A stretch of DNA of 64,000 nucleotides, from positions 496,001-560,000 of the forward strand of contig NW_026782874.1 of NCBI RefSeq assembly GCF_031769215.1. The letters are read 5' to 3'. The notes under the pieces were generated by a model that saw only the letters and a list, made by a program, of their open reading frames with translations, was not told where the DNA came from and did not search any database. The stretch comes from Ylistrum balloti (Eukaryota). Below are positions 15,112 through 32,727 of the stretch, one piece after another. Every line of letters begins with the position of its first letter. The first letter of the stretch is position 1. Position numbers and translations under genes: made by a program.

Positions 15112-18100
15112 TCAGCCGCCGATCTGATTGTCGATAGCCAGACTACCATCGACACACGTGGAGGTGATGGGATCAAAAAAGTCCAGTCCACTGTTGGTAC
15201 ACGACTGCAGGTACATGTGTCCGGTCAGGTCGCATTGGATGTAGTGATGACGGTCACCAAGAACAGGGAAGTACAGCTTCATTTCGCGAATATGGTTCTC
15301 GTCACAGGGCGCTGTGAACACGGGACAGTTTCCACAGAAAGGATATGCTCCAGTCACTGATGGTGTGTAACCAATAGGAAATCCGGCAGTTGGTGACCCT
15401 GGCCCCTGGGCGGAAGGGTTAGTGACTGCAGCTGGCGCCCCGTCACATGCTCCAGGAGCAGCTGTAGGAGGTACAAACGTGTTTGGATTTACGCATGACT
15501 GTGATGATTGTTGAAAGTAGAAATTTGGCGGGTTACACTGACGTTGGAACGATTCATGCCAGAGGTCACACTGAATGTACATAGTTGGGTCACATGGGTA
15601 CGTGTACAGTAACGGATCGTCCGGGGCTCTCATACGACAAGGATTAGCAAAGTTTGAGGGGACGATACAGGTCAACTCATGTTGGTCCCATTCTTCTCCC
15701 TGAGGACACGGTCGGACCCACGCTTTGCCCCACACGTCGCAATGGATGTACTTGGTCACATCAGACGGATAAGTGAAGAAAAACTTATTCGCTAAGATTG
15801 CTTCCACTGAACAAGGATTTGCGAGTGTTGTGGACAGCGGCTTTCCATGAGTAACACAAGGCGTGTCACCTCCAACACATTGCTTACACGCGTCGTAATA
15901 GGATTCATTTTGTGGACACTGTACAACATACAGTTTGCCCTGGTTGTCGCACTCAAGGTACTTGGTAGGCTCATTAGGGTGTGGAAATTTAGTTATTCCG
16001 GCAAGTAGGGTTTCCTTCGTGCAGATGTTGCCATATCCCCAATGTTCTGTTGTATAGAAATAAAATGATACTTTCAGATTCATGAATTTAACTAGAATAT
16101 ATTGTAGCATATCTCATTTAGAATTCAACTTAACCTTATCAGTTACACAAACTGACAATATCATCTGAAAAAGGTTGTTTTCATTCATATTCTATGGTAC
16201 TTCATTCTATCAACGTGTGTCGCAATATTGTAGTAAATAAAGTACTTATAAACAAGTGATAATGACTGAGCATTGTTGAAGACACAGACATAGTTTATAT
16301 TTTCTATTACATCCGTGTTAATTACCTTTGCAGTCATCTGGACACTTGATTTGTACACCATTCTGGTAGCACTTTATCTCTGTAAAAGAAATCATCTTTT
16401 TATCCCTGGTGTCAAAAACACTCCCTCTTGAACAGAAAATATCTAGATTATTTTGTAACGTACTTGTCAGACAAAATAAGATACGTAAATTATTCGTATA
16501 TGGTTAGTGTATAAAACAATGAAATTTCCCGTCCGTTCGTTTATACACACAAATATAACTATATGATAAACGATTAAATACTATTTTGCGGCGTTACCAT
16601 GGTCACGATGGTCTCCAGTGTACGGCGTCACATTGATGCTACAACCTCTGGTCCCATTGGTCAGTTTGAGTGCATCCTCTAGACTCATGAAGAGTGTCTG
16701 GGTAGTGGTGGTATTTCGGAACTTGATTCCTAGTTCGGCAGCCTCGGTTTGAGAGATCGTTTCGTAGTAAGAATTTCCGGGGAATGGAGTTCCGAAGGCC
16801 GTGAATAATGTTATTTTACCGCAGGTCACGTTAGTCTGCATACACAGAACAGAAAATATGTACCGGTGTTGTTCAGTATGTATTAACATAACATAAACAG
16901 CAAGAAGTCAACCAACAGCAATCTTGTCTTCTTTTTTCATTTCAATAGAAAAAAATTGTATTATGTGATTGAAATTTAAATTAATGCGACTTTACCTCCA
17001 CTGTAACACCTCCTGGTGGCGTAATGACAGCAAGTGAAGGACACTCCTCCATCACACATGTGTAGGTGTGGTTCATTTTAATATATAAGGGAGCTGTTAA
17101 ATATAACCAAAATGATAATAACAGTATTACATTAAAAAGAAATACTGACATGTACACCAAATCAAACTCCAATCAAGAGCGTTATATAAAACAGGGAAAT
17201 GAGAATAAAACCAGAGAATCCGGAATTTTTTTCAACTTTTTATATTCCCCCGTATAGTCAAGTAAGGCATAGTCCAAAAGGTTAGCAAATGAAATCTGGT
17301 GTAAGACAATGCTACCATTCAGCATACATGTCAGCCATGGACACATTCATTTCAAGGTATTTCAATGAGAAAATGCTTTTGGTAAAAAAACTATTCTATT
17401 ATTTTTGTGTGAGATACATAAATTAAAGTTAACGATTGTAGTTACTGTCTATTTTCTGACATATACAGAACTGGCCATTCAACCAACAAATACTAATCGG
17501 CACAATCTAGATAGGCCTTACCTTTACAGGTCTTCTCTTGGATCTCTTGTTTCAGCGCCGTCAGGTCGGTGAAACCTGACACCGTCATCACGTGTGTACA
17601 GGATGGACTCGTGGCTATGGTGTTGAGCTCGGCGTGATTGATATGGCTGCCTACCCCAATTGTGAAAGTGACAATATTATTGGCGTGTATTGCCTCAGCA
17701 GAATGCATAGTGTTCAGCCGGTCATTGGATACACCGTCTGTAATCACGATAAGGACCTTCACCGCATCCGCCCGGCTTCCATGGGAATTCTGAAAAGCAC
17801 ATGTTTACCCATATAAGGCTTTTGTTAACGGTTGACTTTGGTACTTGTTCAAGTCTTCTAACCTCTCTAACCAACCGACGGTCAAGAGTGAACGGCCAAA
17901 ACCATGGCAGTGACTATTGCTGAATAACCAAGGTTAGGCAGATTTATTGAATATCATTTCAGTTTATATTGCATAGGCTCTGATTGTACGTTTTTCTAAA
18001 GATACTTAAAGTTACATATGTATAACACAAATTACAAAAATTCAAGAACAAAGCTTTCAAGTGCGTGCGTATACACATGCATAACATAATAACGGGATAG

Positions 18101-19709
18101 TACAGAAACTGTACTTTACCAACAATACCATTTGCTGAGGTAGAGGCGGTATTAAGTATTATGAATCAACATATATCGTGTACTGCTCTGAAGATTCAGG
18201 CACAGACATTATTGTGAGCATTAATCTCGCGAAATGTTCTAGTTATTGCAGTAAGAGATTACCAATGTATTTCGCATATGCATGTTGGTTTACATTGCAA
18301 GTGAAAATACGGTAAGGACAAACATTATTAATGTGAAATATAGAAACAATGGGAAAATGTATTTATAAACAAACTACCTACCTGGAAGACGTCCGTCAGT
18401 GCTTTGTTGAGTGCTTCGTCTGTGGCAGTAGTACCGCTATCGAAGGGTATATTGTCTATAGCTGTGGACACGTCACTTTTGCTGCCGTATGTGTTCAGAT
18501 AAAACCGCGTTACAGCATGTGTTGAGTACGTCACCATAGCGACCCTGGTTTTGTCTGGAGACACCGGAAAGTCATTGACGATGTCCTGAATGAACATTTT
18601 TGATCTTATGTTGTCGTCTAGTGATAAACTGTTTGACTGATCCATGACAAATACCAGGTCGATCTTCTTTGTGTTTGAACATCCTACGGCAGAAAAAAAT
18701 AATACCAAGTATTCTATGTGATAAACAGAATATTTTCAATTACAAATGACATTTGATTAAGCGCAACATCGGTTCGGAACATTATATGACGTGTTTCATT
18801 ACAGAGTCTGTAAAGCGACTGGTCTCAATATTTAACTTTATGGGGAACACACAAACGTACCCGCTATCCCTAACAGCAATCCCAAACAAACATTATTTTT
18901 CTAACAGAACAAACATAATTATCTCTATGGTGGACATGTGCTCGGTTTACCTTCGGCTAGGAGTTCGGCTAGATTAGTGAAGTTGTTTCCACCCATACTC
19001 AGAAAATAGTTGGAAAAAAACTGAGCCTGGTCCTCGACCCGCCAGCCCACTCCTCCGTGTATCTTTGTATAGAGAGCGGCAGCTATTCCAGAGTACAGTG
19101 GCTTCCTCAGATCCACCCAGTTTACCGCACCCCAGTCTATGTTGAACTTCTCGGCAAGCAGGTCATACTCCTTGAGCAGCTGATTACTGTATTTCGTTTC
19201 CAGGAATTTAGCAAGGCTTAACTAAAACAAAAATCAGGAACACTAAGTTCAAGTCTCGTCTGTCTAGGAAATAAATGAAGGTATTCCTTTAAAAAAAGAT
19301 ACAATACTTTCGATATTCTATTTGAAGGCTGTAATCTAGTAGGGTTTTCATGATAATCTTTGAGATTTACAATTTTGAAGATTGTCAAAACAGCTGTTAT
19401 TTCGTTTAATTTCGGAAAAGAAAAATGATAAATTGTATTATATCTTGTTTTCTTGCCAACCTGCCATATGCCACCATCAAAACCAGGACGGTACGTCTTT
19501 GGGTCCGTTCCGTCATATGATTGGACGTATGCAAGTCGTCTTAGGAAGCCTTTGTCGTCCGCATACAGGCAAGACTCCCGGATCCTGGAGACAACAGCCT
19601 CCACCACATGGGCGCCGTTACCCCCGGGCTGTGTCGTTTGGTCTAACCCGAAGGTACCAATTATCACCCCAACACAAACTACTGACACACATACTCCTAT
19701 AACATTCAT
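15112..19709 (-). CDS. Gene A: secreted lysozyme-like domain (Glu>Gln) + VWA + beta-rich domain + 4 chitin-binding-type repeats (Pif97/BMSP-like), 8 exons, 804 aa
   Basis: Exons 19709-19461, 19221-18951, 18683-18382, 17789-17522, 17093-16996, 16835-16598, 16379-16326, 16046-15112. All are GT-AG and in phase, total 2415 nt. Hydrophobic leader MNVIGVCVSVVCVGVIIGTFG. VWA has DLVFVMDQSNS, TAT and VITDG. Four repeats of the form C..(F/Y)P(H/Y)P..Y(I/L)xCD..G......CP..(W/F/Y)......C. AATAAA at 14942-14937. Confidence 0.9.
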
Positions 19710-22545
19710 CGCGGCAAATGAATTAAGAAACAATGTGAAGTAAACGTATGTTATTTCTTATCAAAAACTTCCTGGTAAAGTGCGTCTGTGGATTGCCATA
19801 TTCACTGCATAGGCGACAAAGGAAACAATAGGTTTGGCACGAGTCGGTTTATCTTATGTATGACTGAGTCGCGTGCATGCATTATAGTGATCGTATTTGT
19901 TTATGAGCTTTATTTCAATATATCAGTAAATCACGCTACAGATGAACTGTACTTATATGAGTCATGCATGTTATGTCATTTTTGAAAAAAAAAATTAAAT
20001 AGATTATTTATATATACCTTTTTCTGCTATAAGTTTTAAGTTTTAACCATCTTATATCACTACATGTATCATAGACAGCTGAAAGTAATGAAACAGTTTT
20101 TTTTTAATTCTAGCCAAGCCAATTTTCAATTTATTCAAAGAGAAACATTGAACGTTTATTTCATAAAATTGTATATCAAATCCCTTTTATGCAATATATT
20201 ATAGAACATATTCATTATGTATCTTATGTAGTAAATCTCCTTATAATGTATAAGATAGTCATTTGCTTTACAGGAACATTAGATATATTATGAATTTCAT
20301 GTTTTTAATACACATTATCGTGTGAAATATACTTTACACTACTTTATATTTCCCTCGGTCCCCACCCCAACCTTAGGTCTCAGTGTTGTAGGCCAATCCC
20401 ATCCTTAAAGAGTCTTAGAAGGGCAAAACAAATGCACACAGCTGTTTAATTATTTGGCTGTAGTGTATCCAATTTGATATTTGTATTGAAAGGAGCTATC
20501 AATCTCTGCATCTTTTGTATAATCTTCGAACAATTTTAATATGACGTTCGACTTATTCGACGATCTATCAACTTGTAAATTTGTTGTTGTTGTTCCGATT
20601 CTTAACTCAATTTTATAATGTGACAAGGCTACTAAACAAAGTATCATTGCTGATGTCGTCGAAGAAGTAAGGAGAAACGTATCCTCCCTTAACACGTGAG
20701 TTTTCTTTCTTTTTCTCTGTATGTGATCTCCGTATAGTCACAATACCTTTGTTCATGCCTTACTCTCTTGTTAGGAATTTTAGTTTATTGCTACGGTTTT
20801 GTCAATATGTTAGTTATTTTGTGTTGTGAATTTTTTTCATGATAATCTGGCGGTATCATTTTATGATAAGAAAATATAATGATAAAAGCAATTTCCGATG
20901 TGTATTTGTAAATCTACATTTAGCATTAAAGATAAGATAACGGATTCTACATGTGAAGCCATTGGCTGTATTTGTAAGCAGAGAAACCATTCTCGATGAA
21001 TAAATGAGAACATGATGCTAACTTCCATGGATTACTAGTAATTGTCGATCAGTAAAACATATTCTTTCACAGAAGGTTTACAGACCTTCGATTTTAAACT
21101 AACGGTTATACTTTGTGAAATTTCTATAATTATTTTACATATATGTGTAACTACTTTCGGGAACTAATATTCCTCACTATCAAACATCTTGCAAAATGGC
21201 AGACTTTTTCTACTACAGAAATGACCTTTCGAAGGACGATTATACTGATAGTAACCTGTTCGTTCCAAGGTAATACGTTTTGCGCGTGATGACGTGTGTA
21301 GTTTTAATACTATGTAAGGCTTTATCTTGATAGACTAGCCCGCCTATAATAAGGTATTGTACTTACTGTTAGTCACGTAATAGTGACACTGATTATGTAC
21401 AGACTTAAAACAGATCAGCGTGAAATGTTTACTTTTTATGTATCATTTAGTCTTATTCTTAAATAAACAAATACTGGTGAATTCATCTAGAAAAGTACCA
21501 GGGATCAGCGCAGGAAAAGCTGTGCACTTTCATAGTTGCATGTTTGGCAGACTTATTTCGTTTATGCAATGAGAGTTGCACATTGTGATAAAACAAAGGC
21601 CGTCTTACGTTTCGCACAGACTCACGTAAATGATATAACGATTTTGTGGGGAAGACTATCATACATTTCCCGTTAAGTTTTAAAGTTTTATAACTCATAT
21701 GCTATGAAATAAGCACGACTTCGATAAGCACATAATTTACAACCTTCGAAGGAAATCAGATGAAAATAAAAAGAATAGTTTACTTTATAGGTTTCGTTAA
21801 TTAATACCAAACAGTTATGACTTTTACTACAGTTTTTCTTATACGTAGCAGGATTACGAAATATAATTGAAAGTATAGTACGAACTATCTAAATAGTTTT
21901 GTGATATGGCAATGATATTAGGGAAAAAACGAACAATCATTCATAGATTATTTATATTGAGTGTATAATCTGTTTCGTTTATTTTCAATTTTAATCAAGA
22001 TGTTTTAACTGTTGTTGTTTTCCTGTAATTTTCAAAGGGAATTTGAAAGAAAATTGAGCGATTATCATATTTCATTCAGAGTATAGTTCAAAGGTCGATT
22101 GAGCTTTAATTACAGGAAGTTGATGGAAAATATGCTCATGTTTTTTTATCTTCTTAACTTCAGTTCGATTTTGCCTTATCTTGTGTTACATGGAGTTCAA
22201 TATCTTTAAATATAGAAGCATAGATATCTTCAACGTTCAAGCCATAAGTGAAACACGCATTATGTTGTAAAAAAGGTTTATTACTTACAATTAATTTACT
22301 TAATAATTCAATATCTATCTAATACTGAAATACGTTTTTCTATGCCACATCTTTGATATTTCTTTGTTGTTGTTATCAGATGTAAAAGTTAAATACATTT
22401 GTCACAAAGATGCCTCTGAGTCTTCAGATACGTAACAACAGTGTGTTGTGTTCCAGATCTCGATTGGTGTCTACAAAACCAGATCTCTTAGAGACAAGTA
22501 AATAACATTTTCGCCAATAGTCTATGACTCAAAGATATCAAATTC

Positions 22546-24962
22546 TTATTTTTTGCCTACTACTGGGACGGGAACAGTGCTCATGACGAAAAGGCCCCTT
22601 GGCACGCAGTTGAGGATGTCTTGGCGCCAAATGAAGTATGGTTTGCAAATTTTCTCGAAAGCATCTCCGTACTGGTCACAGTGAATATACTTCTGGGGAT
22701 CGCTGGGGTGAGGATAGAAGAAAAGGTCAGGAACGGTTCCACAAGGCTTACTGTTAGATCCAAATGCGCCCTTTGTTGGGTCAACAACTACCTCTCTGTA
22801 GAGGCAGGTTAGAGTGGCCTGGTCCCAGAAGTGATGAGGTTCGCAGAACTTCACCACAGCTACGTATGGAAGGTTATAACATTCAATATAGGCCTGATCA
22901 TCGTTAGGATAGGGAAAGAAAAAGAGTCCATTGAGAATATTTTCTGGTGTACACGGATTGCCAGTCTGAACTACAGCGTTCGTAGGTCTTGGTGTAACTG
23001 ATGGCAGAGGGGTCATAGTGGTTCTGGGAAGGGTGAAGGTCATCGGCATACCCGGTATGCACGTCTGTGCCTGTAGGTCAAATATTTCCATAAATGGACA
23101 TAAAACTTCAAACACATTACCATTGCCATCACAGTAAAGGAATCGGTCGTTTCTCAATGGATGAGGAAAGATCTGGATGCCGCTGCTTGAACAGGGGTTG
23201 GGGGCTGTAAATAAAAATACATGACATGGATTATGTAGGCCAATTTGTTAGACATTCAAGTATCTGTCTTGTCTATACATGATTGTACGCCCATTTCATC
23301 AATATTGTCGGTTACGCGAGAACTTAGACGTTCACGTTATTCAGAAATGGAGCATACATTTTGTATTTCTATATATCCTCGATGAAAATGTACCATCAAG
23401 CGCGATATTCGTCTGCATTATAAGTTAATTGAAAGGGTTAGTTAATTTTGATAGAAATGCATTATTTGATAAAGAAAATATTAAAATTATTAGATTCTCT
23501 ACGTCTTTTCGCTTCTTTCGAACCATACGCTGCTTTCTTTCAGTTATTGATATATGTACATTTCGAAAATTATTTAAAGGTATGTCTTCATCTATCAATT
23601 CATTATAGTATAGGGTATATACCAGGTGGTACTTACAGTATGGAGTAGGCACAACCATGTACTGACTACCGAAAAGAGTTTGAGCCGAGCAGTTGACAAT
23701 GATCCTTCCAGCTTCTATACACAGCAGGTTATTATCTACAAATTTAAAGTTTGTTTTGTTTTATTTGAACAATGTCTATTAGTTCATCTTGACTTTATCA
23801 CACACATATAACAACTGTCAAATATGACGCCAGTAGATGTCTAACATTATCACAAACAACGTAGTGCTCATTATTCGATTCTGGCTAAATCGCATAAAAC
23901 GCTTCTTTTACTTGTGGTACTATGATACATATAAAGCTGTCTTTAACTTCTAGATATGTAACTATGACACATATAAAGCTGTATCTAACTTCTAGATATG
24001 TAACTATGACACATATAAAGCTGTATCTAACTTCTAGATATGTAACTATGACACATATAAAGCTGTGTCTAACTTCTAGATATGTAACTATGACACATAT
24101 AAAGCTGTCTTTAACTTCTAGATATGTGACTATGACACATATAAAGCTGTATCTAACTTCTAGATATGTAACTATGACACATATAAAGCTGTATCTAACT
24201 TCTAGATATGTAACTATGACACATATAAAGCTGTCTTTAACTTCTAGATATGTAACTATGACACATATAAAGATGTCTTTAAATTCTAGATATGTAACTA
24301 TGACACATATAAAGCTGTATTTAACTTCTAGATATGTAACTTCATATAGATATGTAACTATGACACATATAAAGCTGTATCTAACTATGACACATATAAA
24401 GCTGTCTTTAACTTCTAGATATGTAACTATGACACATATAAAGCTGTCTTTAACTTCTAGATATGTAACTATGACACATATAAAGCTGTCTTTAACTTCT
24501 AGATATGTAACTATGACACATATAAAACTGTCTTTAACTTCTAGATATGTGACTATGACACATATAAAGCTGTATCTAACTTCTAGATATGTAACTATGA
24601 CACATATAAAGCTGTATCTAACTTCTAGATATGTAACTATGACACATATAAAGCTGTATCTAACTTCTAGATATGTAACTATGACACATATAAAGCTGTA
24701 TTTAACTTCTAGATATGTAACTATGACACATAAAAAGCTGTCTTCAACTTCTAGATATCTATGTCACATACAAAGATGTCTTTTACCTAGTTGTTAATAT
24801 CTAACTTTATTACATAAAAAGCTGTGTTCTTGTTGTGAATCCAAACTACATATCTGTCAGAACAAGAGTGTGTACTCTGGGCTCTGGTCTCGACAATATC
24901 ACTTTATGCGCTTTATGGAGGGACAATATCACTAACAATGATTCAATGATGTAATATGAATA

Positions 24963-24999
<37 letters not shown>

Positions 25000-27900
25000 C
25001 TATTAATATATATAAGGAATGTATTGAAGTGGTGACTGCTTTTAACAGAGACACCTTTTACGATGTGCATTGAAAAGTAAATCTTCAAGGTTTTCGTTGA
25101 TGACACATATTATCTGCCATACGTCATTGGTAACTAGCATTCCATCCAGCAAACTATATCGTTGTCCATGTTATTCCGCTTATTCCTTTCTTAATTACAT
25201 TTCAATGAAGGAAATTAGGATTTAATTCAGCCTCACTCTTATATTGAATACTGATAGCCTCACCGCCAGTCATACACTTACATGGTCTGATGTTGTTTCC
25301 TTCCTCTACAGTGATGTTAAAGTTCCCGGCACAAGTCTTTGTGGGATAAGTGGACATAACTGCCAAAGCCACTGACCGGTTACCACGGACATAAAACGAC
25401 TGTCCAGCGTTGATGTCGGCAATTTTGTAGAACTCATTCAATACGGGACTTGGATTTGCTGACGTCAGAGATCCAAACACGGACACAGTACCATCAGTAG
25501 GGGTGACCTAAGATAAAATTATTTCCAAGATTATGAAAATTCACCATTTGCATGACATTTTAATATTTAGCTATTGTCTTCGTTATTCATCTCGACATTT
25601 ATTTTATTGCGCTATGATATGCAATGTATTTAGAATGTAAATATTGTAACGTAGTAATTGTATCAGTAGAATTTACCTGGGACAGTGTTGTAATGATCTG
25701 AATAATCAAAGACAATTACAGACATAACAGTTGATCATGCTGTAATGTTTGGTCCTATTAGGACGATGACAGGTATCATAACGTTAAACGTTGTTCCTGT
25801 TGTTACTTTTGCCTCTAAATGAACAATGATCAATTTCCTATCGTTACAGTTGATGTCATTATGCTTGGTTCTATACGGACAATAACTGGTATCCTGCAGT
25901 TACAGTTGTTCCTCATGCTATGTTTAGTACTATAAAGACAATATCTGTCTATTTACTGTGAACCAACAGGACAACAACCGGTGGCCTATCGCGACGTTAA
26001 TCCTTCTGTATTGTTTTGTGCCATTAGTACAATAACCCGTGATTTACCGCGACAGTGATTCCTGGTGTATTGTTTTGTGCCATTAGTACAATAACCGGTG
26101 GCCTATCGCGACAGTGATTCCTGGTGTATTGTTTTGTGCCATTAGTACAATAACCGGTGGCCTATCGCGACAGTGATTCCTGGTGTATTGTTTTGTGCCA
26201 TTAGCACAATAACCCGTGATTTACCGTGACAGTGATTCCTGGTGTATTGTTTTGTGTGGTTAGGACAATAACTGGTGGCCTATCGCGACAGTGATTCCTG
26301 ATGTATTGTTTTGTGCCATTAGGACAATAACCCGTGACCTACCGTGACAGTGGTCCCTGCTGTAACGTTGGGTAGGATCTGTACGTTGATGTCACTGCCA
26401 CAGTTATACTGGTAGTTGTTTGGAGTCAAAATAGCAGCAGCTTTAACATTAGAACATTTAAAGTGAAAGTATCAATCATTATTTGGAATAATTTGAAATT
26501 TCGGGTTTAAGAATGTATTCATTTGTCAATCACTTTGCACAAATTATTTTCATTTTTGCGCTTCCGTTTTTTATTATGATAATCTTACTATCAATATCCG
26601 TCATGTCGTGGCCTTTTCATTTTGTCATGTTACGTAAAGTAATGCCTTGTTCTAGTCGTGTCATAGCGATAACGATTTCAGTTCCGAGAGGATTTGATCT
26701 AACGTTTTAGACAGGTACAGAGTGTCCAAACCAGTACATATTTCATTATTTTAAGGTCAAACTCATTATAACACTCCATGTTAAATTAGCAGCAACTTTT
26801 ATTTCAATCATCACAAGTTTCTTTGTCATTTATATCACATTATTTCTCTATGGATTTGATACAACATAAATAGGTTATCGTACTTTACGAGTTGGTCCGT
26901 ATTATATAATTAAAGCCAAGTCCATGGTAACCGTTACTTCCTATAGAGAGTTAAAGAAAAAAACGTATTGGAATGGAAGACTATCCCAAATTACCGACGT
27001 ATTCATTCATTCCTCTTCCTATCGATTAACTCAATGCACTAAGATATAGAATTCCAATCCACTCTACTTGTTATCTGTTTTGCCATATAATGTTAAATGC
27101 ATTTCAATTTTTTTCGAACTTTTCTACCACAGACATAACATTTCACAAATATTAATTCTAAACATATCACACTCATCATAAAAATTTTTCACATCATGCT
27201 GTCTTAGGGTGTTTAGTTAGAAAACCTGTTCATCTGATATTCAAGATATATTCCTATTTTCAGTAATCGTCATATAGTTCATTTTCACCGAGTTAATGTT
27301 TTTCTTACCTTTGCATGAAACACTCTGGATCTGAGTTTTTAGACTGTCTAGATCAGCGTAGCTGTTTAAGATCTGCGAGTGAGTACAGCTTGGACTACTT
27401 GCAATCCCGTCTAATTCGATCTGTAAGCAAGTGCGTTATGTATTAAAGAATAGTTCCAACTAAAACTACCGACGATGCTTTCTTCTTCCATATAATTAAT
27501 AATTTATTTAGTTAATTAGAACCATTGTCGATGCAGTACTATATACTGGGATAATTTCACCCCAGGTTATTTTCGCCAAAGTACCACACAGTCTCGCCTC
27601 GTGTTTATTTCGTCCCCGAGGATTATATAAAAAAAATTATACAAATGGAATATATTTTAAAGTCGCCTTTCTTGTTCCTTAGCGAAAAGGGCACAATTCA
27701 AATGGGGGCAAAATGCCCATGTAGAGTATATCATTTTTTATATACATACAACATACACTAAATTGAAATTCACACGTGCATATGATATATCGGAGAAAGA
27801 GATTTACTCTTATTATTCTTTTTTCACTTAATGTACTTTTTTCAAATACTACAACATGAAGTAAATAAAACCTTTCTATTCCATATAAACATGTTACCAA

Positions 27901-30900
27901 AGAGGTTAAAACATGTTACCAAAGATGTTAAGAATCGTCTACCTTGTTGACATACTGTGTGACTCCCAGCGTAAATATGGTAATACCACTCAGCCTGGCG
28001 TTGTTAGCAGCATTCAGTGTGTTTACCGTATTTTCTGATCGACCATCAGTGATCAAAATCATAACCTGTATAAGAATATCAGTATACAATATTCAGAGAA
28101 ACCTATATTTTCCTGATTTGTTTTATCACAGACATTGATTATATGTTATTTTTCAATTCTTTCTAAAAACCAACACTTCATTTTCTCTTCGTCTTTTGAC
28201 ATCTCTTCTTACTATAGTTGTACCGTTATAGTGAAATATGTCTTACAGCGATGATAGTCAATGTATTAGAAACATACTGCAGGACAATGTATTCCTTGCA
28301 TTATGTTTGATTTAAGCTAAGACACTTCTTCATATATATATATAATTAATATCGCCAAGTATATGCTTTCATTCCGCTGACAGGGTTGGCAGTGATGTGA
28401 GAAAACATATTACAAATGCTGTATTGCTTCTGAACGTGATATGATAAGGGAAAGAATTATATGGAGGGAAAATCGGGGGTTTTTTCTCTTTTTTTTTTTT
28501 TTTTTGTAAAACATGTCCTCTATCAGTTAAGTCTACTTGTAAGCTTTTTGGTTGTTGGAGTTGAATTAAATTTCCTATAAAACATCAAGAAAATACCAAT
28601 ATGTCAACATAATCATGATGTAAAATCAGTTCCATTATAACTAAGACAGAACAATAAAAAAGAGGATTTCTTTTTTTTCCCTTTCTTCGAGATTATTAAA
28701 AGTCGTCAGAAGGATCAGATTGTAATATTCTGGTATGAGATACTACCTTGGCCGCACCATTCCGTGCACCGTTGACTGTTGCGAAGACTTCATTAACGGT
28801 TTTATCAATGGCGGCAGCAGTGTTGGTACCGCCTGGGCTGTATATAATACCATCTACCGCCTTCTTCACTGCATCTTTTGTGTCGAATTGGTTCAGCAGG
28901 AACGAGGCCGAAACAGCTGTACTAAATTCCACCACGGCCACACGAGCAGTCTGTGGTCCGATATCAAACTGGTCGACTACATCCTTTACAAATTGCTTTG
29001 TGATATCAAAATCGGATGGAGAAAGACTTGCTGAGCTGTCCACAACAAAAACCAAGTCAATAGCATTGGTGCTGCGGCATCCTAGAAATAAGATAAAACA
29101 TGTCATTACTTTTGTTTAGGAAAACGAAGATTTGATAAATATTTGAAACTTATTACATACAAAAATGCCTATATATAAACTAATTTCATTATGATGTCAT
29201 TTGCTTACGTAACGGACTGTCTACGGTCTCTTGGTTAAAAGATATGCCTGTTACGCTGGTTTACTTGGTGACTCTTTTGTTGTTAATCGTGTCGTTGTTT
29301 GGGAACGTGATATTATTTACTAGGATTTAACAAGATTTACTTAACGATGACGTTGATTACGGAAATGAAGCTAACTCATATTCTCATCCATTTTTCAAAA
29401 TCATTGTAAATCTTCTTTTGGCAATATTTTGTCTCCATTTCATCGATTTCGATTTTGAATTATGATCATGTTGGCATTTCTGCATTTATCAACTGATATC
29501 AAACAAGATAATAAAAATGGTTGTAATGGTATGCAGAGGTAGTATGGCACAGCTATGCCTCGGAAAAATAAATTACACATATGTATCGAATCTTGTTTGT
29601 TTTTTTTGTTAAAAAAGAGTGACTGATAGCTTACCTCCTTGTAACTCATTGACTGCTTTGTAGTATTTGTTGGCGTCGAAAATAGTGTGTTTTGTGGTGT
29701 TAATCCAGAAAGAACTCTGTTTTTCTACGGAACTGGGGAGGACACCCGATCCAGACTTGAGAAGCGTATAGAGAGCGGCGGCCACACCAGAATACAGAGG
29801 TTTTCTTAAGTCTTCCCATTTAGCTGATGACCAATCGATTGTCAATGTGTTCCTAAGGAGAGCTCTGGCTGTGGCCAACATTACAGCTGACTGTGTCTGT
29901 TTAAACTGGTCCTCATCAATCTGTTAAAATATATATAAACATGAAAAAGAAAGAAAGCAAACAATGAAGGACTTAAAGATAGAAATAGAAAAATTGATAA
30001 GAAAAGGAAAGAACGAAATCTGAAAGACATTTGTCCGTTTTGCTAATGTTTCTATTGAATCGCTGTAAAAGAAAGAAATGAGGTAAAACTATTTAAATTT
30101 TAGTGTCTTGTTCGAATCTGAGAGTTATCCATTCTTTGAGGAGAATGAGTAAACTGAAAGAAAATGCACCGGCTGATAGTTACTTTCATTCTCAATGAAT
30201 GTATAGCAACATCAATACTTTTATTTCGTTTTGAGTAATATGTCGTTAAAAAATTCCAAACGGAAATGGACTTTCACGTGCTACCGTGTTACTGTCTAAG
30301 GTCTGCGGTAAATGGACTTCCACGTGTTACTGTCTAAGGTCTGCGGTAAATGGACTTCCACGTGTTACTGTCTAAAGTCTACGGTAAATGGACTTCCACG
30401 TGTTACTGTCTAAAGTCTACGATAAATGGACTTCCACGTGTTACTGTCTAAAGTCTACGGTAAATGGACTTCCACATGTCACTGTCTGAGGTCTACGGTA
30501 AATGGACTTCCATGTGTTACTGTCTGAGGTCTACGGTGAATGGGCTTCCACGTGTTACTGTCTAAGGTCTACGATAAATGGACTTCCACGTGTTACTGTC
30601 TAAAGTCTACGGTAAATGGACTTCCACATGTCACTGTCTAAGGTCTACGGTAAATGGACTTCCATGTGTCACTGTCTGAGGTCTACGGTAAATGGACTTC
30701 CACGTGTCACTGTCTGAGGTCTACGGTAAATGGACTTCCACGTGTTACTGTCTGAGGTCTACGGTAAATGGACTTCCACGTGTTACTGTCTAAAGTCTAC
30801 GGTAAATGGACTTCCACGTGTCACTGTCTGAGGTCTACGGTAAATGGACTTCCACGTGTCACTGTCTGAGGTCTACGGTAAATGGACTTCCACGTGTCAC

Positions 30901-32727
30901 TGTCTGAGGTCTACGGTAAATGGACTTCCACGTGTTACTGTCTAAAGTCTACGGTAAATGGACTTCCACGTGTCACTGTCTGAGGTCTACGGTAAATGGA
31001 CTTCCACGTGTCACTGTCTGAGGTCTACGGTAAATGGACTTCCACGTGTCACTGTCTGAGGTCTACGGTAAATGGACTTCCACGTGTTACTGTCTAAAGT
31101 CTACGGTAAATGGACTTCCACGTGTCACTGTCTGAGGTCTACGGTAAATGGACTTCCACGTGTCACTGTCTGAGGTCTACGGTAAATGGACTTCCACGTG
31201 TTATTGTATAAAGTCTACAGTAAATGGACTTCCACGTGTTACTGTCTAAAGTCTACGGTAAATGGACTTCCACGTGTTACTGTCTAAGGTCTACGGTAAA
31301 TGGACTTCCACGTGTTACTGTCTAAGGTCTACGATAAATGGACTTCCACGTGTTACTGTCTAAGGTCTACGGTAAATGGACTTCCACGTGTTACTGTCTA
31401 AGGTCTACGGTAAATGGACTTCCACGTGTCACTCTCTAAGGTCTACGGTAAATGGACTTCCACGTGTTACTGTCTGAGGTCTACGGTAAATGGACTTCCA
31501 CGTGTTACTGTCTAAGGTCTAAGCATGGCACTGAACATTTTGAGACGAGTTGTGTGGCACTCTTGGTCATTGTATAGATTACACAACGTAACGTAAGGAT
31601 TGCTTGCCTGAAACTCGTAGCCGAACGAGAAAATACCTATATGTGAGCATAATCTCATAAACCAAACTCAAATTCAATAAAACTAGGGCAATATATGAAC
31701 AAAGAAAATAATATCACGGAGACTGCAGAAAGAGTGCAATTAGAATAAGACCTGCATCTCTTGAAACCCCGTGTCAGTCAGCTGATGACATCTTTCATGA
31801 AATGCTGGCACCATTCCGCATGGTAGAAGTATGAAATTGGGCTTTACAGCTATTGCACGTCCATAAGTACAATTCTAGTTAGTGTTAAATCAAAAGGTTA
31901 TTGATCAGCGATACTCCACTGTAACTGCCTTGTTGAAATAATTGTTTAAACAGTTACATTTGCTATCATTGGTATCAGATAGGATGGTACAAAATGGAAC
32001 ACATCTTAATGTCTTTCTAGGGTTAGGTATATGTACGCTGGTAAGATATGGTAATATAGCGCAAGAACGTCTCTTAAGCTCGATCGATTGAGCATCAGAC
32101 GTGTAAGCAAGGGGTCTCGGGTTCGAATCCTAGCGTAGGCATTGAAATAAATATTGAGGCAAATAATTATTTAAACTATATGATACAGTTGTTTTGTCCT
32201 TCTAGAACTCGTTAGTGATGCTTAGGGTGTACATTTTGAAGCCAATCAGGCGATTGAGAAAAATCCAAAGTGATCGAAAGAAAAGTCAACATCTAGACGG
32301 TGAGGTATACTAGCCCAACAATTCATAATTCAATAAGTTTCGTTTTTACATGTTTTATAAATAGTATTTTTCTATTGATGAAACATGCTAGATTTGAACT
32401 TTACATTTCCAAAACGCAGCAAAGGGATATATATCTGTAATATATACAGTAAATGTCATTTCCATCCTGTGACGGCTAACTCACCTGCCATATTCCACCA
32501 TTGTAGCCTACTCTGTAGGTATCGTTTGCTGTGCCGTCCTGGGACTCGACGTAAGCCAACCTGCGAAGATACAGTCTGTCGTTGGGGAATATGCAAGATT
32601 CATGGATGAGGTTGATGACAGCCTCTACCACGGCAGAACCGCTTGCTCCAGGGACTCGTGTTTGATCCTGCATCTGGCCACTACACAGATACGCCAGTCC
32701 CAAAATCAAAAATGTTCTTGAAATCAT
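22546..32727 (-). CDS. Gene B: secreted lysozyme-like domain (catalytic-type Glu retained) + VWA + beta-rich domain + 3 chitin-binding-type repeats, paralog of gene A, 9 exons, 726 aa
   Basis: Exons 32727-32485, 29920-29635, 29081-28747, 28065-27943, 27420-27309, 26440-26343, 25507-25282, 23735-23637, 23204-22546. All are GT-AG and in phase, total 2181 nt. Signal peptide MISRTFLILGLAYLCSG. VWA has DLVFVVDSSAS, GGTNT and LITDG. It shares LRRLAYV(E/Q)S.DG, GGIWQ, DLRKPLYSG.AAALY and SP.SCTH with gene A. AATAAA at 22282-22277. Confidence 0.9.
23920..24790. repeat. 42-bp minisatellite, about 20 copies, in gene B intron 7
   Basis: Unit TATGACACATATAAAGCTGTATCTAACTTCTAGATATGTAAC. It produces the repetitive 291-aa ORF (YVTMTHIKLYLTSR)n. 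Confidence 0.97.
24964..24994. repeat. (TA)n microsatellite
   Basis: Direct TA run. Confidence 0.9.
25968..26360. repeat. 59-bp minisatellite (about 6.5 copies) overlapping the 3' end and splice donor of gene B exon 6
   Basis: Successive 60-nt lines repeat with a 1-nt shift (period 59). The last unit overlaps exon bases 26343-26360. Confidence 0.93.
30261..31521. repeat. 38-bp minisatellite, about 33 copies, in gene B intron 1
   Basis: Unit CGGTAAATGGACTTCCACGTGTTACTGTCTAAGGTCTA (CGGTAAA at 30306 and 30344). Confidence 0.97.
32069..32141 (+). pseudogene. Degenerate tRNA-like sequence (tRNA pseudogene or SINE head, Thr-UGU-like)
   Basis: A-box-like AGCTCGATCGATTGAGC, B-box GGTTCGAATCC at 32120-32130 and TGT at the anticodon position. 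The anticodon and acceptor stems do not pair properly. Confidence 0.55.

Follow-up and report, generated by a model that had tools for sequence, protein, structure and literature searches.

A divergent lysozyme-like domain, structurally closest to GH23 lytic transglycosylases, in a secreted VWA–CBM14 protein of the scallop Ylistrum balloti

Gene B, on the minus strand of a 64,000-nucleotide stretch of Ylistrum balloti DNA (NCBI RefSeq assembly GCF_031769215.1, contig NW_026782874.1, positions 496,001 to 560,000; hereafter the window, to whose positions the gene coordinates refer), encodes a secreted protein made up of a signal peptide, a 160-residue lysozyme-like domain, a VWA domain, a linker and CBM14 repeats. 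The N-terminal domain has diverged far from the GH23 lytic-transglycosylase/goose-lysozyme group, to which it is related. Its predicted structure has a lysozyme-like fold that is closest to that of the GH23 lytic transglycosylases, and one of its residues, Glu61, falls on the position of their catalytic glutamate. The domain represents a distinct family within the lysozyme-like superfamily, which is not covered by Pfam and is common to molluscs, annelids, echinoderms, one bacterial lineage and tailed phages.

The window consists of AT-rich animal DNA whose genes contain introns, and the lysozyme-like domain is divided between the first two of the nine exons of gene B (Table 1). The gene model, which ends at 22546 and encodes 726 residues, was guided by the annotated ortholog of Argopecten irradians, P0007 (XP_069121965.1), and its splicing rests on orthologs. 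The translation of exon 1 ends with LRRLAYVESQDGTANDTYRVGYNGGIWQ at a canonical GT donor (32484–32483), and exon 2, which contains WEDLRKPLYSGVAAALY, begins with IDEDQF. This splice is supported by the ortholog, which reads GGIWQIDRDQF over the same junction, and by the agreement of the complete nine-exon model with P0007 (659 of 726 residues identical, ~91% over the full length). The position of the intron after GGIWQ is common to gene B, its tandem paralog gene A and a third paralog in the same genome. A hydrophobic N terminus is seen in the orthologs of gene B too. Downstream of the lysozyme-like domain, Pfam recognizes the VWA domain (2.7e-29 on exon 3 and 6e-45 on residues 185–356 of P0007) as well as three CBM_14 stretches in P0007, and no Pfam family was found in the linker encoded by exons 6–8.

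A sequence-only reading of this stretch had noticed three motifs of the GH23/SLT type in the N-terminal domain, namely AYVES with Glu61, YNGGIWQ|IDED, which straddles the splice junction between exons 1 and 2, and KPLYSGVAAALY. All three are present in the sequence, and their likeness to the SLT family goes beyond chance. Fold and family tests were run on P0007 rather than on the spliced gene B domain itself. For comparison, 30 SLT domains (PF01464 matches) from bacterial genomes were aligned and compared by hhalign with the alignment of the family, which gave P values of 0.003 and 0.005, against 0.44 and 0.88 for reversed-sequence controls. In the resulting register, LRRLAYVES lies on la.qES, with E61 on the catalytic glutamate of the SLT ES motif, GGIWQ lies on GlmQ, and DLRKPLYSgLAAxLyL (DLRKPLYSGVAAALY) lies on e..dP..n...a..yL, so that both the E-S motif and the motif II hairpin/dP..N helix of SLT/GH23 enzymes are found in the domain. 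In an alignment of 40 family sequences, no variation is seen at the motif positions G, A, G, GGIW, P and Q.

The AlphaFold2 model of P0007 residues 18–178, computed from the 40-sequence alignment (predicted local distance difference test score of 94, predicted template modelling score of 0.90), places E61, which is residue 44 of the model, at the C-terminal end of helix 36–45, followed by a short hairpin. Results of an exhaustive VIA-align structural search of 48,161 chains with this model show 45 chains at Z≥5; the best 47 entries listed (Z 8.9 to 4.7) are all lysozyme-like, and the first unrelated fold appears at Z 4.4. Among these entries are phiKZ gp144 (Z 8.9, 131 residues aligned, 3.4 Å), MltE and MltC (both Z 8.8), a Thermotoga GH73 enzyme (Z 8.6), Slt70 and MltF (both Z 8.4), Pseudomonas aeruginosa Slt (Z 8.2), the Ralstonia GH23 chitinase Ra-ChiC and phi6 lysin (both Z 8.1) and g-type lysozyme (Z 6.0). 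The GH23 lytic transglycosylases align with 120–135 of the 161 residues of the domain model at Z 8.2–8.9. A Foldseek search of the PDB gave weak matches (E 0.65–4, template modelling (TM) scores of 0.43–0.47), headed by the Ralstonia A-471 GH23 chitinase and then by MltE, Slt, phi6 lysin and g-type lysozymes. When the Foldseek candidates were re-scored, 44 chains reached Z≥5 and, among the entries listed, all those at Z≥5.3 were lysozyme-like, the next value being Z 3.1. The kinship with the lysozyme-like clan that had been supposed from the motifs is thus borne out by the structural searches, which return almost only lysozyme-like entries.

The structural alignments also agree with hhalign on the glutamate, which had been assigned to the catalytic position from the motif alone. 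Simple offsets place MltE E64, P. aeruginosa Slt E503 and Ra-ChiC E141 on model residues 42–45, within one or two residues of E61, and E44 (that is, E61) is the sole acidic residue in that stretch. GEWL E73 (goose-type lysozyme, 153L) and Slt70 E478, which we take to be the catalytic glutamates of these enzymes, likewise fall at model residues 42–45.

The domain had been thought to be unannotated, and the sequence searches agree. Neither the separate gene B exons nor residues 18–178 of P0007 gave a Pfam match for the N-terminal domain, none of 40 family domains had a Pfam match even at E≤10, NCBIfam returned nothing relevant for the domain, and sequence and profile searches of the PDB gave no match for it, including none to a PDB GEWL. 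The names under which orthologs stand in the databases ('uncharacterized', 'cartilage matrix protein', 'collagen alpha-6(VI)-like', 'matrilin-2-like') cover the VWA part only. The domain is not recognized above the gathering threshold by the Pfam SLT (PF01464)/CAZy GH23 profile; the search of PF01464 that had been proposed for it is therefore negative, so that membership in this Pfam family is not detectable. A six-frame Pfam SLT search of the animal's genome returned five other loci and missed genes A, B and C, and hhalign against a poor five-sequence SLT alignment made from the animal's own contigs gave nothing. The only direct Pfam SLT match is that of the second domain copy of an Owenia fusiformis protein (P0121, CAH1783424.1), which contains two copies of the domain and a C-terminal CBM14; it covers SLT positions 15–56 with a sub-threshold E value of 0.0026. 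The protein-language-model neighbours that have a Pfam family are all of lysozyme type (SLT, SLT_3, SLT_4, Phage_lysozyme2, Destabilase, Muramidase).

Canonical SLT domains were found in uninterrupted frames of 697, 518 and 147 residues on three other contigs of the assembly, C1333, C740 and C679 (loci L007–L009). These frames look bacterial, and the contigs may come from a contaminant or a symbiont.

The lack of any Pfam, NCBIfam or PDB sequence match, together with Foldseek E values above 0.6, is what would be expected if the motif likeness were a coincidence in an unrelated helical domain. This explanation is essentially excluded, since the whole-domain structural matches are essentially all lysozyme-like with a sharp drop to unrelated folds, the motifs lie in register where reversed controls fail, and the second Owenia copy retains its weak match to Pfam SLT.

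The best whole-domain matches are the family-1 lytic transglycosylases of GH23 (MltE, Slt70, MltC, Slt, MltF and phiKZ gp144), which share with the scallop domain, in the same order and register, the glutamate of a helix-end 'ES', a G-x-x-Q hairpin and a P....yL helix. However, identity amounts to 8–13%, GGIWQ stands in place of GLMQ, and gene B appears to have Thr in place of the AYNAG Tyr. A conserved TYRxGY loop, the DG that follows ES, the fusion to VWA and CBM14 and the animal host further distinguish the scallop domain from these enzymes. Goose-type lysozyme belongs to the same superfamily and shares the fold, the position of the catalytic glutamate as judged by offset and the occurrence in secreted animal proteins, but it is a weaker match (Z 6.0–6.3), with no detectable sequence similarity and a different multidomain architecture. 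Identification of the domain as a goose-type lysozyme proper was rejected, as the lytic transglycosylases, the GH23 chitinase and the GH73 enzyme all outscore the GEWLs. Of the sequence-only reading's divergent GH23-like domain, then, the GH23 likeness stands, with the lytic transglycosylases as the closest structures, whereas the likeness to goose-type lysozyme itself is weaker (Z ~6 versus 8–9). GEWLs are thought to have been acquired from bacteria, and a 2026 survey assigns 129 of 131 GH23 sequences from metazoans to a single g-type clade (PMC12855814); the family of the scallop domain is separate from this single metazoan GEWL clade and not nested in it. Ra-ChiC (Ralstonia sp. A-471, PDB 3W6B–3W6F), the top Foldseek match (Z 8.1–8.7), is nearly equal in size to the scallop domain (~150–160 residues), and both occur with carbohydrate-binding modules, but the two are 8–10% identical and show no sequence similarity.

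A three-sequence profile of exon 1, searched against cluster representatives, recovered a family of at least 720 representatives at E≤1e-3, with 376 at E≤1e-10. Named members occur among molluscs in scallops, abalones, Littorina, Aplysia, Elysia, oysters and an ark clam, and outside molluscs in the annelid Owenia and the brittle star Amphiura. The architectures of the family comprise the domain followed by VWA and CBM14, the domain followed by VWA, EGF, MAM and LDLa (Amphiura), two domains with CBM14 (Owenia), three tandem domains and single secreted domains. The animal genes are not contamination, because they contain introns and lie on chromosome-scale scaffolds. Four proteins encoded on ENA metagenome contigs of at most 1 Mb (P0001, P0002, P0009 and P0016) consist of a signal peptide and three tandem copies, without VWA or CBM14, and keep the glutamate in every copy.

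Conservation of the glutamate was counted over 136 domain copies in the top 150 cluster representatives. The E61 position is Glu in 110 of the 136 (~81%), Gln in six and Ala in five, other residues (L, V, N, S and so on) being scattered, and Glu is retained in the bacterial and phage homologs. A search of the scallop's own genome found just three copies of the domain, those of gene A, gene B and a third paralog on contig C569 (L003 1441–1713, minus strand; L006). The Gln of gene A is also present in its ortholog P0003; the C569 copy reads AIVQS, again with Gln at the catalytic position, and its Argopecten relative P0024 reads AIAQS. The Gln paralogs would be catalytically dead glycan binders.

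The same could in principle be said of gene B, whose domain would then be a non-catalytic glycan-binding module, a lectin-like sensor or anchor in which Glu is kept for binding or stability. Such a role would accommodate the 26 of 136 copies that have another residue in place of Glu (Q, A, L, V, N, S and others), the Gln of two of the three genome paralogs and its conservation in their orthologs, the possible loss of the fourth GH23 motif Tyr in gene B, and the adhesive nature of VWA and CBM14 modules. We regard it as improbable, though a serious alternative, given that Glu is found in 81% of copies over three animal phyla as well as in bacteria and phages and that the other groove motifs are nearly invariant, a pattern to be expected of an enzyme family that occasionally gives rise to pseudo-enzymes.

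The phage family phrog_3108, of unknown function, and a set of secreted bacterial proteins are true sequence homologs of the animal domains, in line with the phage or bacterial connection that the motifs had suggested. Animal proteins are 36–50% identical to their phage and bacterial counterparts. Of 40 animal domains, 31 match phrog_3108 (best E value of 6.1e-17, profile positions 10–155 of 160); the gene B ortholog P0007 does so weakly (E 0.01, positions 10–134), and the homologs from phages and bacteria reach 1e-10 to 1e-16. Unlike gene B, the phage and bacterial proteins are single-domain or carry the domain at the C terminus of a large protein, without VWA or CBM14. A tblastn search of GenBank phages gave a single weak match, in a 636-kb uncultured phage that encodes a 203-residue homolog with the motifs IAMTETKLG...GVWQIDE. 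Structure databases yielded three phage clusters in the ESM Atlas (TM scores of 0.78–0.84 to the domain model) and a 1021-residue Caudovirales protein in BFVD (E 6e-6, TM score of 0.81). When viral contigs were scanned for patterns from single phage proteins, the queries themselves made up most of what was recovered, and a word-based protein search with the phage domain returned four proteins, of which at least three look eukaryotic (signal peptides).

In one viral contig (L013, IMG/VR UViG_3300020461_000555) the domain forms the C terminus of a 1256-residue protein (FLRRIAFVESDYG...GIWQI; 36% identity, E 1e-21). The gene order over L013:1467–9142 is a tail protein, a 174-residue protein, the 1256-residue protein and a 1302-residue gp16-like protein, the last of which matches phrog_342 ('internal virion protein with endolysin domain') at profile positions 250–1209 only and shows no Pfam SLT match. 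The block looks like one in which a wall-cutting domain has been displaced to the neighbouring gene. Judged from this gene context, wall cutting by the phage ejection apparatus may be the task of the phrog_3108 domain. Comparison with the T7 gp16-type internal virion protein points the same way: the L013 domain lies in the same gene block, directly before the gp16-like protein, and the analogy suggests the same role, cell-wall piercing during genome ejection. The L013 domain ends the preceding protein, whereas the lytic transglycosylase domain of gp16 is N-terminal, and the two belong to different sequence families. The first ~250 positions of phrog_342, missing from the L013 gp16-like protein, may be where the endolysin domain of that family lies.

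The bacterial homologs come from four related metagenome-assembled genomes and are single-domain proteins of ~200–300 residues, 42–50% identical to animal proteins; at least three of the four begin with a signal-like N terminus, and the three whose flanks were examined are surrounded by ordinary bacterial genes. In a quick maximum-likelihood tree, which has an arbitrary root and includes only six prokaryotic or viral sequences, the bacterial clade and two phage sequences fall within a subgroup of annelid/echinoderm type (Shimodaira–Hasegawa-like approximate likelihood-ratio test, 98), and the molluscan VWA-fused group that includes genes A and B is separate from this subgroup. In two of the bacterial genomes a conserved gene of 158–161 codons with a signal-like N terminus directly follows the homolog (L018:2524–3000 and L020:1796–2281), overlapping it in L018. 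The two products are 44% identical to each other and have no Pfam family; they may act as inhibitors, as immunity proteins or as partners.

As for function, we tentatively propose, at somewhat short of an even chance, that gene B encodes a peptidoglycan-cleaving, possibly chitin-cleaving, enzyme tethered to chitin. Glu61 would act as the general acid that cleaves β-1,4 bonds in a glycan of N-acetylglucosamine and N-acetylmuramic acid, and the likeliest substrate would be bacterial peptidoglycan, cut in the manner of a muramidase or of a lytic transglycosylase. It is the relatives in phages and bacteria that make peptidoglycan the more probable substrate. Anchored by its CBM14 repeats and VWA domain, the enzyme would sit on a chitinous extracellular matrix, whether of the shell, the periostracum or the gut lining, and would protect this surface against bacteria.

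Several observations weigh against this account. No sequence profile identifies the domain as SLT/GH23, and the hhalign probability is just 7–10%, although we count this modest score as specific because the reversed controls fail. Z values of 8–9 are rated middling by the structural tool; the matches carry weight nonetheless, because the list is uniform and whole domains are covered. A residue of the groove is possibly missing: hhalign places the family-consensus Tyr (YN in the phage-like subgroup) on the Tyr of AAYNAG, and gene B and P0007 have Thr (FWINTTK) at that position, in a stretch of low alignment confidence. The ~19% of family copies without Glu show that the fold is useful without catalysis. 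Lastly, the fusion to CBM14 and the GH23 structures bound to chitin oligomers make the assignment of the substrate less certain.

This last point lends some weight to a chitin-active enzyme, that is, a GH23-type chitinase or remodeller of shell, periostracum, radula or gut chitin that is guided by its CBM14 repeats, which we judge to be unlikely but worth keeping in view. The chitinase of Ralstonia A-471 heads the Foldseek list, several of the structures that match best hold a chitin oligosaccharide (chitopentaose in MltE-E64Q, chitotetraose in phi6 lysin and chitotriose in Cj0843c), fusions of the domain to CBM14 occur in molluscs as well as in the annelid Owenia, and VWA combined with CBM14 is how Pif/BMSP shell-matrix proteins are built (PMC11291548). 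On the other hand, the nearest non-animal relatives are virion-associated phage proteins and secreted bacterial proteins, for which peptidoglycan is the expected substrate, and many members of the family (single-domain, triple-domain and the brittle-star VWA-EGF-MAM-LDLa proteins) have no CBM14.

The resemblance of gene B to Pif/BMSP extends to the order of a signal peptide, VWA and then CBM14 repeats in a secreted protein. However, descriptions of Pif/BMSP proteins mention no lysozyme-like domain at the N terminus, and no laminin-G-like or Pif80-like part was seen in gene B. Identity with PifS1 was considered and is unconfirmed: the 'long insertion' before its VWA domain is described as rich in low-complexity sequence (PMC11291548), and no link to it was found. 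A literature search found no paper that gives the GGIWQ motif or an accession of the orthologs, nor one that describes VWA shell-matrix proteins with a transglycosylase-like domain.

Table 1. Features of gene B and its tandem paralog in the window
Feature	Position	Strand	Basis
Gene A, tandem paralog with the same architecture as gene B, Gln at the catalytic position (AYVQS)	15112..19733	-	
Start codon and predicted signal peptide, ~residues 1–17, MISRTFLILGLAYLCSG	32677..32727	-	Exon 1 translation; cleavage site inferred
Exon 1, 81 codons starting with ATG, phase 0: signal peptide and first half of the domain (AYVES, GGIWQ hairpin)	32485..32727	-	
Glu61 codon GAG, equivalent of the GH23/SLT catalytic Glu	32545..32547	-	Sequence, hhalign register, structural offsets
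Intron 1 (GT...AG), holds a 38-bp minisatellite	29921..32484	-	
Exon 2, 95 codons + 1 nt, preceded by AG: second half of the domain, KPLYSGVAAALY and QSSFW region	29635..29920	-	
Exons 3–5 (29081–28747, 28065–27943, 27420–27309): VWA domain	27309..29081	-	Pfam; borders from spliced model
Exons 6–8 (26440–26343, 25507–25282, 23735–23637): linker	23637..26440	-	Spliced model
Exon 9: CBM14 (peritrophin-A) chitin-binding repeats and stop codon	22546..23204	-	Pfam CBM_14 1.1e-11

Gene B also contains tandem repeats. The 38-bp minisatellite of intron 1 (30285–31521; 32.6 copies, 94% match) fills about half of that intron and produces dozens of overlapping 33-residue pseudo-open reading frames on the plus strand. 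A 59-bp array with a 177-bp higher-order unit (25968–26364) overlaps the 3′ end of exon 6, where a segment made up of the exon end and the adjoining start of the intron seems to have spread into the intron by tandem duplication. The intron between exons 7 and 8 holds a 42-bp minisatellite (23919–24783; 20.6 copies) that yields a spurious plus-strand open reading frame of 291 residues. On the minus strand, a stretch of intron 1 at ~32060–32140 resembles the 3′ half of a tRNA (ggattcgaacccgagacc...), which suggests a fragment of a tRNA-derived short interspersed nuclear element; ARAGORN found no tRNA in this stretch.

The customary list of animal lysozymes comprises c-, g- and i-type enzymes, together with the phage-type (GH24) lysozyme acquired by some bivalves. 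It is conceivable, although on balance doubtful, that the present domain constitutes, in marine bilaterian invertebrates, a second and hitherto unrecognised lysozyme family that is independent of all four of these types and has been exchanged horizontally with tailed phages or bacteria, coupled to matrix- and chitin-binding modules and repeatedly converted by Glu-to-Gln replacement into pseudo-enzymes, maybe sensors of peptidoglycan or chitin. The family is hidden from Pfam and from annotation, yet it has hundreds of members with a conserved catalytic glutamate, and the 36–50% identity among its animal, bacterial and phage proteins makes it a clear case for the study of gene transfer between domains of life. 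Within the scallop genome, the tandem pair of genes B and A, with Glu and Gln respectively, offers a natural comparison of an enzyme with a pseudo-enzyme.

If active, the domain would found a new family at the level of CAZy and would add a class of antibacterial or chitin-processing enzymes to invertebrate immunity or biomineralisation. Activity would also explain the unannotated N-terminal region of many VWA/CBM14 proteins, and it would give phrog_3108 a testable function, that of a virion-associated wall-cutting domain. It is probable that animals with this domain possess a second kind of enzyme for cutting cell walls, one that has been overlooked.

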